DNA of 64,000 nt, taken from the NCBI GenBank assembly GCA_977030845.1, contig OZ365113.1:6324001-6388000 (forward strand). Direction: 5' to 3'. The position numbers and the translations under genes are program-made. The notes below the pieces were generated by a model. That model saw nothing but the letters and a program-made list of their open reading frames with translations, was not told where the DNA came from and made no database searches. Below are positions 31,213 to 61,288 of this stretch, one piece after another. How positions within the stretch are numbered: position 1 is the stretch's first letter; every line of letters starts with the position of its first letter. Source of the DNA: Fimbriosthenelais zetlandica. Its lineage: Eukaryota.

Positions 31213-31400
31213 TCAATATAGTCCACAGCCTCTCAGGTTGTTGGCAATGATCACATCTGTCACTGCGTCAAACACGAATTGGATATTATTCGTATCTGTA
31301 GCGCAAGTTTGGTGGCAGTAGATCTCTTTTGTTGTGCTCTTATTCTTGGCCTCAAACTGGGCTTGGATGTAGGCAGCGGCTTCTTCGTATATTTGCTTAC
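31213..31400 (-). CDS. GNAO1: G protein alpha-o, exon 8 (188 nt incl. stop)
   Basis: [34 protein letters not shown]; C-terminal CGLY pertussis-toxin site typical of Go. Confidence 0.97.
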
Positions 31401-32510: not shown

Positions 32511-32747
<237 letters not shown>

Positions 32748-36371: not shown

Positions 36372-36501
36372 TGTTGTTTCGTCTTCGTGTAAGACCTGGT
36401 CATATTCACTCATAGCTACACAGAAAATGATAGCTGTAACGTCTTCGAAACAGTGAATCCACTTCTTTCTTTCTGATCTCTGACCACCTACATCGAATAA
36501 T
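36372..36501 (-). CDS. GNAO1: G protein alpha-o, exon 6 (130 nt)
   Basis: [43 protein letters not shown] (G3 box, switch II). Confidence 0.97.
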
Positions 36502-37986: not shown

Positions 37987-38239
37987 GCACCTTAAAGATT
38001 CTGTGTATTTGCATGGAAACGAAGAAAGGCGTGAAAAACACGTTGAAGCCTAAAATCAAGACATTCCCGTCTAGACTTATCTTTGGTCAGGCTATTTTAG
38101 CTACATATTAATGTATTATATATATCATACCATGCCAGTAAGCTTCAGCATTATAACAGGCCTGCCAGAAGCAATATTATTGGTTCAAATGAGTCTCTTA
38201 AGCTATTTTCACGGTTAGTGACAATTGGGTTTCACTTAC

Positions 38240-38280
38240 GACGCGTTGCGATACCTGAAGTCGTTTGAACAACGCGACAT
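38240..38280 (-). other. Candidate 41-nt (or 26-nt) frame-shifting cassette microexon in the Galpha-o intron after exon 5B
   Basis: Pyrimidine-rich acceptor ctgcacctccccctAG; donors cag|GTATCG and gtc|GTAAGT; CpG-rich sequence within an AT-rich intron. Confidence 0.4.
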
Positions 38281-38449
38281 CTAGGGGGAGGTGCAGCAGA
38301 TGACATGCACCATGATTCGTCCACACTCTACTTTGTTCACCCCTCTAAATTTCCACATTAATTTTTTTTCTGTCTTTCTTAATAGCAAATCTGTTTGAGT
38401 CACACATTTCTGGGGTTGTAATGTCCATTTTAGGACCAGGTGCAGTTAC

Positions 38450-38578
38450 CTGAAGTTCAGTTTTTTAAAGTTGAAGTGCACCTCAACTATACCGGTAGTC
38501 TTAACACGCGTACGTAAGATGTCTTGTTCTGTTGGTGAATAATTCGGCTTTCCTAACCGGTCTAAGCTATTTAGGAAA
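38450..38578 (-). CDS. GNAO1: G protein alpha-o, exon 5B (129 nt, alternative)
   Basis: [43 protein letters not shown]; canonical AG/GT; correct phase 2-2. Confidence 0.9.
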
Positions 38579-39297
38579 CTGTAAACAATGACAGACAAGA
38601 CAAAAGTGTAAGGCCACAATGAAGTGTTTGAACTTAAATAAGAAATGAGGGAAAACACAATTAAAAGAAATCTGGTACACTGGAAACATCGTAATCTGGA
38701 ATAGAAGCGTGATCAGTGTTCCTAGTAAAACCTGGAACACACTAATCCGATTCTCCAATCCATCGCCGTGCGATCGCCCGTATCTAATGGCATCCAATGA
38801 CCGAAATTTTGTCAGTGGTTACCTTGGTCTAGGTGTAAAGGTCTGTTACAAACATTTGGTGTGAATAGAAAGACAGCTATCGGATGGAGCCGGATAGAGA
38901 ATCGGATTAGTGTGCTCCAGGCTTAAGTGAGAGACAACCACAATACGGGACAGAGATGAAGTTGAAGTTGAAGAGAGAAATGTGAAATGACCTATTATTG
39001 CCTAACATCCAAACACTTGACTTTGTGTACTGATGACTGCAAAAGCGCAGTGGAAACATCATAATGAATCCAACAATTCTGACATGTTTAGCACCAAAAT
39101 ATTGATGAAAAGTTTGATGAAACATTATTTCTGACATCATTGTAAAACAATAACTTCGGGCTTTCGAAGAAAACCCCTAATAAAGTATCATTAATTAATT
39201 CGCACAAAGCCAAATGTTTAGTTGAAGACATATTCTAAAAGTGCAGAAAACACTCACATCCACCGGGACACAACAGCTCATGAAGTACAGTACTTAC

Positions 39298-39426
39298 TTG
39301 AAATTTAAGTTCTTAAAGTGGAAGTGTACTTCTACTATTCCAGTAGTCTTTACCCTTGTTCTAAGAATATCTTGCTCAGTGGGCATGTAGTCTTTAGTGC
39401 CTAAACGTTCCAGGTCGTCTAAGAAA
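39298..39426 (-). CDS. GNAO1: G protein alpha-o, exon 5A (129 nt)
   Basis: [43 protein letters not shown]; canonical AG/GT; TACTAAC branch point at 39451-39457. Confidence 0.93.
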
Positions 39427-40834: not shown

Positions 40835-42922
40835 TATTCCGCTCCCTCTGATTAGGGAACACCTCCTCCTTTTCCTCAAAATAATATTCCCAGTATTTAC
40901 GGTATAGGGAGGGATGCTACGGAGCGTTCCTATACTATCACAAGGCATCGGCTTTCCCTCCCATCCCTCCCCTCCCCTCCCCTCCCCGGCTCTCCCCAGC
41001 ATCACACAGAATGAAACCCCAACCAAATCAGAGACCCAACCCTCGTGTTAGCTTTCCCTCTAAAACATACCAAATAACTCGGTCTAACCCAGTTTAAAGT
41101 AGGGATGTGACGATGTTTATTCCCCAATTTAAGCTAAACCCACACAGCTAGCTGTCCGCCATGTTCATGTAAAGTGTGTCGTTGCGTGGAGCCATCAGCA
41201 TAATTTATTTCATCCAGGCTCCTGAGCACACCATGAACGGGACCGTACTGTCCTGCCCACTCGCGGTTCATTCCCGTACTACTAACACCACTGTCTCTCA
41301 CTCAGAAAAGAAGCTTCATTCATGAATGGAATAACCGCCCAACCCTTCGCGATTGGGATTATAATTTTGACGTTAAAATAACATTTGCAGGATCCTAAAT
41401 TAATTTTTATTCCATCCATATTAATTTTAACATTTTTAATAGTGAGGATTATGGAATTTTGTTGGGGAACAGGACAGCCCCCCAAAAAACTTGTATATAG
41501 GGAATACAAATAAAAATGTTTTAAAAACCTTTATGTTCTAAAAAACTAGTATGGGATGTATGCGCTAAATTATGGGATGTTGAAGTTCAATACCGCAGCA
41601 AATTTACTGACAGGTATTCTTCTACATATACGGGTCCATTTCTGATCAATTTCGATTCCAACAAAGGGATAACAGAAGATGTATTAAAATAGCTAAAATA
41701 GGTCGGATAAAATAGTTTATCACTAATTTATGCGAGCACAATCCTTTAAAATTGACCCCATTTGCACACGCCTGTACCATTTTCCAGTACCGGTATTTAG
41801 TGGAACTGCAAAACTAAGGTCTTGATGTATATAGGTTCTATACTACTTTACACCCGTGGTGCAAAAATGAGTTAATTTCCCAATCATACATTGAAACATA
41901 TTAGACACTTTATAGATCAATATACAGAGTGTCTCAAAATTAAAGCATGCCGGGATATTTTACATTTTTAAACATGAGCAGTTTGTTTTCTTGTTCTTCT
42001 CCTTGCATGGTATCCAGATGGCCTTATCAGGAACTAAACATGGCAGATCATAAAATACTGATTGTTAAACAAACATGCTTACAAATCACAATAGTCCTGT
42101 TGAAATCTTACTATTTCTTCTTCCCCCAGGCCCCGCTGATATTTTGATGTTCGGTGGTCCCCCAAGGGTCCCCACCTAGCCACGGACATAAATTTACTGA
42201 CCAACTTCAAGATTTACTTGAACACATGTTATGCTCATTTGCGAAATATTAATTATTTTAAATTTGTATTCTTTTTTAAATTTGTATTTTTAAATGTTAT
42301 TCTCAACCTGCACATTAAAGTATCGGTTTTGACTGACTTTTCCAATCACCCTCACAGTTTTTCCTGAACCGTGGGAACTCTAACCGTTGGATATTTTAGG
42401 AAAGGACATGAAACCAAAAAGGTAAGGATTATTTAAATTGACACCTGACCAACATTGGGAAAATGGATCCTTTCAAGACACCAGATTTATTCTAATGGGT
42501 GTTATAAAAGTACAATGTACCTTATAAGGAAAACCAATAATGTATATTATTATAAATAACTTCCTGTTGTATAGTCTTAAGGCCGGAACACACTAATCCG
42601 ACTCTCCAATCCGTCGCCATCCGAAACCCGTTCTATGTACATGTACATGTACAAGCATTTGGTCTGAATAGAAATATAGGTTCGGATGGAGCTGGAAAGA
42701 GAATCGGACTAGGGGGACCCAGCGAGAAACCTCCTGGCTTAGAACAAGAAATTTGTGACAGATGTATCTGTCATTTTAGGAAAAACCTAACCAGGAAAAT
42801 TGAAGGAAACTCCTAAATACCGACAAATTCCTACATATTATTACATGTCATTGAATAAGAAAAATGTAATTATGTTATTATTTTGACATAATAATTGTTT
42901 TGAATTTGGAATGAAGACTTAC

Positions 42923-43083
42923 TATTTTGCAGAGTCATTAAGTTGGTATTCATTCGACCGCCCAAAACATTCCTGCACGCCTGTATCTGCCCACAGCCTC
43001 TTCATAGCTTGTAGAAGTTCTTCAGAAAATGGCTCTGTGTCTTCCATACGGGCGATCACGTCCAGTACCATCTTTGCGTCCGA
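42923..43083 (-). CDS. GNAO1: G protein alpha-o, exon 4 (161 nt)
   Basis: [54 protein letters not shown]; AG/GT boundaries. Confidence 0.96.
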
Positions 43084-54598: not shown

Positions 54599-54740
54599 CT
54601 CTCTTTCAGGGTCGCCAAAAGCTATGTTTAGTGTGCCCATAGCCCTAATGATGGCCACAAGTGACTGGATCGTATTGCTGTAAACCACTGGCTTAAACTG
54701 CTTGTTATCTTCATTTGTGAAACCGCCTTCGTGAATAATT
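54599..54740 (-). CDS. GNAO1: G protein alpha-o, exon 3 (142 nt)
   Basis: [47 protein letters not shown]. Confidence 0.96.
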
Positions 54741-60775: not shown

Positions 60776-60818
60776 TTCATTTGTTTGACAATCGTACTCT
60801 TCCCCGATTCTCCCGCAC
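60776..60818 (-). CDS. GNAO1: G protein alpha-o, exon 2 (43 nt, P-loop)
   Basis: (G)AGESGKSTIVKQM(K); AG/GT boundaries. Confidence 0.96.
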
Positions 60819-61170: not shown

Positions 61171-61288
61171 CTAAAAGTAACAATTTTATATCCTTCGCCG
61201 CCTGTAAACCGTCCTCTTTTAGGTTTTTCTCAATTTGTTTACTTCTCTCCATGGCGGCTCGTTCCTCGGCACTCATAGTGCAGCCCAT
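61171..61288 (-). CDS. GNAO1: G protein alpha-o, exon 1 (118 nt coding)
   Basis: [39 protein letters not shown](G); Gly2 myristoylation and Cys3 palmitoylation motif. Confidence 0.97.

Follow-up and report, generated by a model that had tools for sequence, protein, structure and literature searches.

Among neuronal G proteins, G-alpha-o is the most abundant, and it is still debated by what means it chooses its receptors and regulators. In Drosophila, isoforms of this protein arise through alternative first exons. Duplications of internal exons have been described in a survey of deuterostome G-alpha genes (Lokits et al. 2018, PMC5896119), in which exon 5 of the urochordate preGNAI gene, homologous to the exon considered here, was found to be duplicated and alternatively spliced. 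According to the same survey, a homologous duplicated and mutually exclusive exon is present as exon 4 of GNAQ/GNA11 in fish (coelacanth, gar and teleosts), and exons 7 and 8 of vertebrate GNAO are duplicated and used alternatively (PMC5896119). In view of the published preGNAI and GNAQ/GNA11 cases, the principle is not new. An earlier sequence-only reading of the locus described below had correctly named the vertebrate exon 7/8 pair as background, but its account was incomplete, as the homologous exon had already been published as duplicated (PMC5896119).

Here, we analyzed a 64,000-nt stretch of the genome of Fimbriosthenelais zetlandica (contig OZ365113.1, positions 6,324,001 to 6,388,000 of the forward strand; hereafter the window), which contains a G-alpha-o gene with two copies of exon 5, named 5A and 5B. 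Our literature search yielded no report of such an exon 5 pair, either for G-alpha-o or for any G-alpha gene of an annelid. The annelid G-alpha-o exon pair is real and conserved, and it has apparently remained unannotated so far.

The explanation that we consider likely is an ancient tandem duplication of the 129-nt exon 5 of G-alpha-o, which would have produced the adjacent exons 5A and 5B as alternatives. Each mRNA would take one of them, giving two isoforms of 354 residues that have the complete GTPase machinery in common, down to the switch I core P170-F190, which contains the catalytic Arg179 as well as Thr182. Isoform A would represent the slowly evolving canonical protostome form, and isoform B a selected but faster-changing form with a signature of its own. 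It may further be supposed that the two isoforms couple differently to receptors or other partners, and that the choice of exon is set by intronic elements, such as a (U)GCAUG downstream of 5B.

Organization of the G-alpha-o gene

Using a motif scan and splice-site reading, we placed the G-alpha-o gene at 61288-31213 on the minus strand of the window, with eight coding exons, the fifth of which is present in two copies:

61171..61288, minus strand: coding exon 1, 118 nt, beginning with MGC; donor GTAAGG
60776..60818, minus strand: exon 2, 43 nt, with the P-loop GAGESGKST
54599..54740, minus strand: exon 3, 142 nt
42923..43083, minus strand: exon 4, 161 nt, with a 3' end encoding NDSAK plus the TA of the Y156 codon
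39298..39426, minus strand: exon 5A (A-type, the canonical protostome type), 129 nt, phase 2-2, AG/GTAAGT
38450..38578, minus strand: exon 5B (B-type), 129 nt, phase 2-2, AG/GTAACT
36372..36501, minus strand: exon 6, 130 nt, with switch II (DVGGQR)
32519..32672, minus strand: exon 7, 154 nt
31213..31400, minus strand: exon 8, 188 nt, terminating with the stop codon

The coding exon lengths (118/43/142/161/129/130/154/188 nt) match the eight-coding-exon structure of Gi/o genes, and the assembled product is a 354-aa G-alpha-o with either 5A or 5B. The P-loop, the switch I Arg/Thr and the DVGGQ, NKKD and TCATDT motifs were all present when the 354-aa products were scanned. When four exon translations were searched with the Pfam G-alpha profile (PF00503), both 5A and 5B exceeded the curated cut-off, and each of them aligned to profile positions 144-185. 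The predicted protein is 96.3% identical to the G(O) subunit of Capitella teleta and approximately 95% identical to that of Octopus, and it was placed in the spiralian G-alpha-o clade. Given the 96% match to the Capitella G(o) protein, the C-terminus and the Pfam G-alpha assignment, the gene is recognizable as a G-alpha-o orthologue in an annelid-type genome.

A tblastn search with the assembled protein detected one copy each of exons 7 and 8 in the window, i.e., there is no vertebrate-type GNAO1 exon 7/8 pair at this locus. The same search revealed no duplicates of exons other than exon 5 within the window.

Comparison of the two copies of exon 5

Exons 5A and 5B lie next to each other, are homologous and agree in length and phase, and each has its own splice sites. 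A polypyrimidine tract, an AG acceptor and a GT donor are found in both copies; the acceptor and donor read TTCCAG and GTAAGT for 5A, and TTTACAG and GTAACT for 5B. The flanking introns are in phase 2 in both cases: exon 4 ends with the nucleotides TA, and the last nucleotides of the two copies (AA in 5A and AG in 5B) belong to a codon that is completed by the first A of exon 6. Skipping of both copies would create a TAA at the exon 4/6 junction.

Isoforms A and B differ at residues 158, 159, 161, 165, 166, 167, 169, 191, 194 and 198, and the segment P170-F190, including R179 and T182, is identical in protein. Within this core, 15 of the 21 codons nevertheless differ. The anatomy of the two exons given by the sequence-only reading (coordinates, the length of 129 nt, phase 2-2 and canonical splice sites), its ten differing residues with an identical P170-F190 and its count of differing core codons were reproduced exactly by exon reconstruction, isoform comparison and codon comparison, respectively. 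The two copies share 83 of their 129 nucleotides, and the synonymous sites between them are saturated (pS approximately 1). Thus, the duplication is old, in agreement with what that reading had proposed.

We also searched the 447-Mb assembly using 5B as the query. The match to 5A had an E value of 2.6e-15 genome-wide, so the likeness between the two copies is far beyond chance. The next best match was one exon of another G-alpha gene, and the remaining G-alpha matches were likewise single exons elsewhere in the genome. Recent gene conversion from the G-alpha-i (Gi) paralogue of the same genome was considered and rejected, as third-position identities are all near saturation (13/42 for A-B, 12/42 for A-Gi and 17/42 for B-Gi).

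Conservation of the exon pair in related genomes

A search with the 42-residue translation of 5B retrieved short genomic ORFs spanning exon 5 in many organisms. One of them (P0001), which matches the query at 41 of the 42 residues, sits on a Logan assembly contig from a near relative (L009), where exon 4, 5A, 5B and exon 6 follow each other in the same order as in the window. The 5A-5B tandem was also found between exons 4 and 6 in the genome of Capitella teleta (L013), whose deposited protein contains 5A, and on two metagenome contigs (L017 and L066). The 5A copy of L066 is protein-identical to the Ridgeia exon. All ten exon 5 copies of the window and these four loci are exactly 129 nt long and are bounded by AG/GT.

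A comparison between the window and L009 yielded identities of 87% for exon 4, 94% for 5A, 90% for 5B and 96% for exon 6. The alignable sequence consists of the exons with their immediate flanks, plus one 72-nt island in intron 4. The introns being mostly unalignable, neutral sequence has diverged past recognition between the two genomes, whereas 5B has not. Moreover, approximately eight of the ten nucleotide changes in 5B are synonymous, compared with two expected (binomial p = 1.5e-4). In both copies, pN stays far lower than pS when the five species are compared (0.01-0.055 for A and 0.024-0.22 for B), which is the outcome of the dN/dS-type check suggested for the two copies. Decayed orthologous copies of 5B were looked for, and instead 5B proved intact in L009, Capitella (L013), L017 and L066. 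With both copies intact, including their splice sites, in four other species or contigs and with changes that are mostly synonymous, the claim of purifying selection on both copies holds. This pattern indicates that 5B is kept by selection and is not a relic.

In the five tandem pairs, protein-level change is 3-4 times faster in B than in A. Three positions separate A from B in all of these pairs (D/S159, N/K194 and K/R198). The B signature (S159, K194 and R198) is constant in five out of five, and the A copy is nearly invariant.

Distribution and age of the exon pair

A second exon 5 is absent in the leech Helobdella robusta, the oyster Ostrea edulis and the snail Littorina saxatilis, each of which has one copy and a short intron 5. 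A large group of metagenome contigs with a leech-like exon likewise has one exon 5. The annotated annelid proteins examined (from Capitella, Owenia, Paralvinella, Dimorphilus and Ridgeia) are all of A type, and so are the named mollusc proteins examined. Since the tandem occurs in several annelids and the leech has one exon 5, the pair is old within annelids and was either lost or never present in clitellates.

In a tree of exon 5 (43 columns), B-type exons fell outside the protostome A-type clade; beyond this, the tree had no resolving power, and it is compatible both with a single origin of B and with more than one. B-type exons share S159, H196 and R198 with deuterostome G-alpha-o, as well as the pattern IQF..KKL..FR with a cnidarian Go-like protein, and one spiralian lineage (L020, see below) has solely a B-like exon 5. 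It is conceivable, albeit quite unlikely, that the A/B pair predates annelids, such that two alternative switch-I exons were present in the G-alpha-o gene of the spiralian or even the bilaterian ancestor, one or the other being retained in each phylum. If so, this segment would have its protostome-type and its deuterostome-type sequence from the two halves of an ancient alternative pair.

Several other variants of the gene were observed in the examined data. In one spiralian lineage (L020:345-1275; P0357, P0454 and P0362), the sole exon 5 after exon 4 is B-like (...IQFDFKKLHFR), and the proteins begin with MST, not MGC. Two G(o) isoforms of the nemertean Tubulanus polymorphus (X1 and X2; P0285 and P0469) have different first exons, and both contain a proline-rich insert of approximately 67 residues between exons 3 and 4, which may be either an extra helical-domain exon or an annotation artefact. 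In Dimorphilus gyrociliatus, two consecutive G-alpha-o CDS (DgyrCDS6031 and DgyrCDS6032; P0478 and P0482) are located on one 4.6-Mb contig and are both A-type; they may result from a tandem duplication of the gene or from a gene model that was split.

Transcripts of relatives and the probable alternative use of the two exons

When metagenomes and metatranscriptomes were scanned with aligned B-type exons (alignment A1) as the query, intron-less contigs were obtained. One of them (L023) encodes a complete 354-aa G-alpha-o, which is identical to the window B isoform at 339 of 354 residues (approximately 96%) and in which one B-type exon directly joins the exon 4 and exon 6 sequences. A lone B-type exon 5 between exons 4 and 6 was also found in L022 (partial), L015 (P0290) and L088 (P0453), and three contigs (L081, L083 and L093) represent A-only mRNAs. 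No A-type partner of P0290 was present among the retrieved proteins. Although the samples behind L023 (B) and L081/L083 (A) are sister samples, assignment of these contigs to one species was rejected because their nucleotide identity is 78%; the A and B mRNAs that could be compared derive from different species. Since a lineage exists in which exon 4 is followed by a B-like exon 5 and no other (L020/P0357), a B-type mRNA of an unidentified organism is by itself no proof of alternative splicing.

Taken together, these contigs provide good evidence that, in close relatives, real mRNAs contain B-type exons in place of A-type ones. For F. zetlandica, we infer mutually exclusive use of the two exons, and given that several other annelids keep both copies intact, this animal most likely makes two versions of G-alpha-o.

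These observations bear on two other explanations. One is that 5B is an unused relic in the window species, intact yet unspliced, which would fit the loss in the leech and the absence in molluscs. The exclusive use of the A exon in all named annelid protein records examined and the single exon 5 of Helobdella are what such a relic would lead one to expect, but 5B and 48 nt of the intron upstream of it are conserved with L009, its changes are mostly synonymous, its splice sites are intact, and a relative whose protein is approximately 96% identical to the window B isoform expresses a B-type mRNA. We therefore regard an unused 5B as very unlikely.

The other explanation is tandem inclusion of 5A and 5B, which would yield a protein of 397 residues in which the switch I segment occurs twice. 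Because 129 nt is a multiple of three, double inclusion keeps the reading frame, and the intervening intron is long enough for splicing. However, the full-length G-alpha-o mRNAs and proteins recovered from relatives all contain a single copy and correspond to 354 residues, and none of the full-length G-alpha-o proteins retrieved and inspected combined A with B in tandem. The two-copy proteins that were seen are identical-repeat gene models (insect and fish) and a Gi-like entry (P0239). Furthermore, the Ras-like fold would be disrupted by a second switch I/beta2. Routine double inclusion is thus extremely improbable, and alternative use of 5A and 5B remains the preferred explanation. The mutually exclusive splicing proposed by the sequence-only reading agrees with the single A or B exon in the mRNAs of relatives and with the lack of tandem G-alpha-o products among them, but a mechanism forbidding double inclusion, which strict exclusivity would call for, was not found.

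Intronic elements and the choice of exon

In the tandem loci, the 5A-5B intron is 190-720 nt long and all splice sites are U2-type. Considering this intron length, the U2-type sites and the in-frame double inclusion, we rejected the idea that exclusivity is enforced by steric hindrance, by U12 incompatibility or by NMD. That no enforcing mechanism emerged lowers the certainty of strict exclusivity, not that of alternative use. Three intronic features were examined in this context:

38579..38626, minus strand: conserved intron segment directly upstream of 5B, 48 nt, with a polypyrimidine tract and a likely branch site CTTAC
41153..41224, minus strand: candidate regulatory element in intron 4, 72 nt, present once in the genome, with 82% identity to L009
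38304..38308, minus strand: GCAUG in the context GGUGCAUG, 142 nt downstream of 5B, a candidate Rbfox-type intronic enhancer

The 48 nt upstream of 5B align with L009, and the rest of that intron no longer aligns. Likewise, intron 4 outside the 72-nt element does not align with L009. We folded the conserved intronic islands and found no competing RNA pairing that holds in both the window and L009. The pairing fold of the 72-nt element was marginal in the window (p = 0.04 versus control windows) and not significant in L009 (p = 0.15), where it involved a different part of the element. Docking/selector pairing between this element and the conserved flanks of 5A and 5B was accordingly rejected as a conserved mechanism.

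The GCATG motif occurs seven times in four 300-nt stretches downstream of 5B and not once in the four stretches upstream of 5A (window, L009, Capitella and L017). The shuffle p value is 5e-5 before correction for approximately 18 comparisons and roughly 1e-3 after it. In the window, the motif (38308-38304) lies in a GGTGCATG context, as it does in L009, and Capitella has four GCATG; the region of the window around the GGTGCATG motif (38230-38315) does not align with L009. A search for Fox-1_C (PF12414) gave no match in the genome, and as the control genomes were equally without a match, this negative is uninformative. The position of GCATG downstream of 5B fits an Rbfox-type enhancer that would promote 5B inclusion.

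A MITE-like element is also present in the 5A-5B intron (38728-38927), with 25-nt terminal inverted repeats (GAGAATCGGATTAGTGTG.TCCAGG). This repeat has 12 copies in the window versus 0 expected, including one at 42576-42606 and ten further sites. The element folds into a hairpin of -89 kcal/mol (z = -6.8), and a complementary copy in intron 4 may pair with it across exon 5A. As nothing alike was found in L009, the element is best described as a species-specific insertion, not an ancestral splicing control.

Isoform differences and their possible function

The segment encoded by exon 5 runs from the end of alphaE through the alphaE-alphaF loop, alphaF, linker 2/switch I and beta2 to the start of beta3. 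The A/B differences fall into two parts of it: residues 158-169 in the helical domain, at the end of alphaE and in the alphaE-alphaF loop, and residues 191, 194 and 198 in the beta2-beta3 hairpin. This segment has been described as an interface for G-beta-gamma, RGS proteins and effectors (PMC5896119, Lokits et al. 2018). Residue 194, which is N in A and K in B, adjoins Leu195, and V34, L195, F336 and I343 of G-alpha-i/o form the pocket that receives intracellular loop 2 (ICL2) of Gi/o-coupled receptors (PMC9173784). The helical-domain part of 5B resembles G-alpha-i (LN.LDR...PNY), and in a PDB comparison 5B scored equally against Gi-alpha-1 and Go.

Since the catalytic Arg and the Thr are within the invariant core, both isoforms should hydrolyse GTP alike and make the same central RGS contact. 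Different partner selectivity of isoforms A and B is plausible, because the variable residues flank this core, residue 194 is next to an ICL2 pocket residue and 5B has a Gi-like segment. Alternatively, the 5A and 5B protein segments may be functionally equivalent, the pair being kept for separate control of splicing or expression (regulatory subfunctionalisation). The identical catalytic core would agree with this, as would the motif content around the two exons, GCATG being found solely downstream of 5B. On the other hand, the constancy of S159, K194 and R198 in the five tandem pairs, together with a nearly invariant A copy, points to specialisation at the protein level. Equivalence of the two segments is thus unlikely, and we favor two isoforms that would differ in their partners.

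Comparison with known systems

Annelids appear to offer a natural two-state experiment on G-alpha-o, in which the catalytic core and the receptor-binding C-terminus stay the same and the alphaE-alphaF and beta2-beta3 regions are varied. As the annotated annelid G-alpha-o proteins examined contain the A exon only, annelid expression atlases and knock-outs may overlook the B isoform.

The closest parallels are urochordate preGNAI and fish GNAQ/GNA11, in which the homologous 129-nt exon (alphaE to beta3, including switch I) was likewise locally duplicated and put to alternative use. Unlike those cases, the present one concerns G-alpha-o and annelids, and the published survey covered deuterostomes only (PMC5896119). 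With a different gene family and a different phylum involved, the annelid G-alpha-o duplication is a separate event. It is a further independent duplication and retention of the homologous exon, after those in tunicate G-alpha-i and fish G-alpha-q/11, and such repeated duplication strengthens the idea that the exon 5 surface is a preferred site for tuning G-protein specificity. We also noticed three entries (P0112, P0114 and P0115) in which the homologous exon is present as two G-alpha-q-type copies in tandem, so near to each other that they read as one ORF; they represent the known Gq-type duplication, here observed beyond the published fish cases.

Like the GoA/GoB pair of vertebrate GNAO1, the window gene belongs to the G-alpha-o family and has tandem-duplicated alternative exons that would give two full-length proteins. 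However, the vertebrate pair swaps the C-terminal third of the protein (alpha4-alpha5, including the receptor-binding helix), unlike the pair in the window gene. Drosophila and Tubulanus G-alpha-o provide a further example of invertebrate isoform diversity generated by alternative exons, but their isoforms vary in the N-terminal helix, with neither switch I nor the helical domain affected, and involve no tandem-duplicated internal exon.
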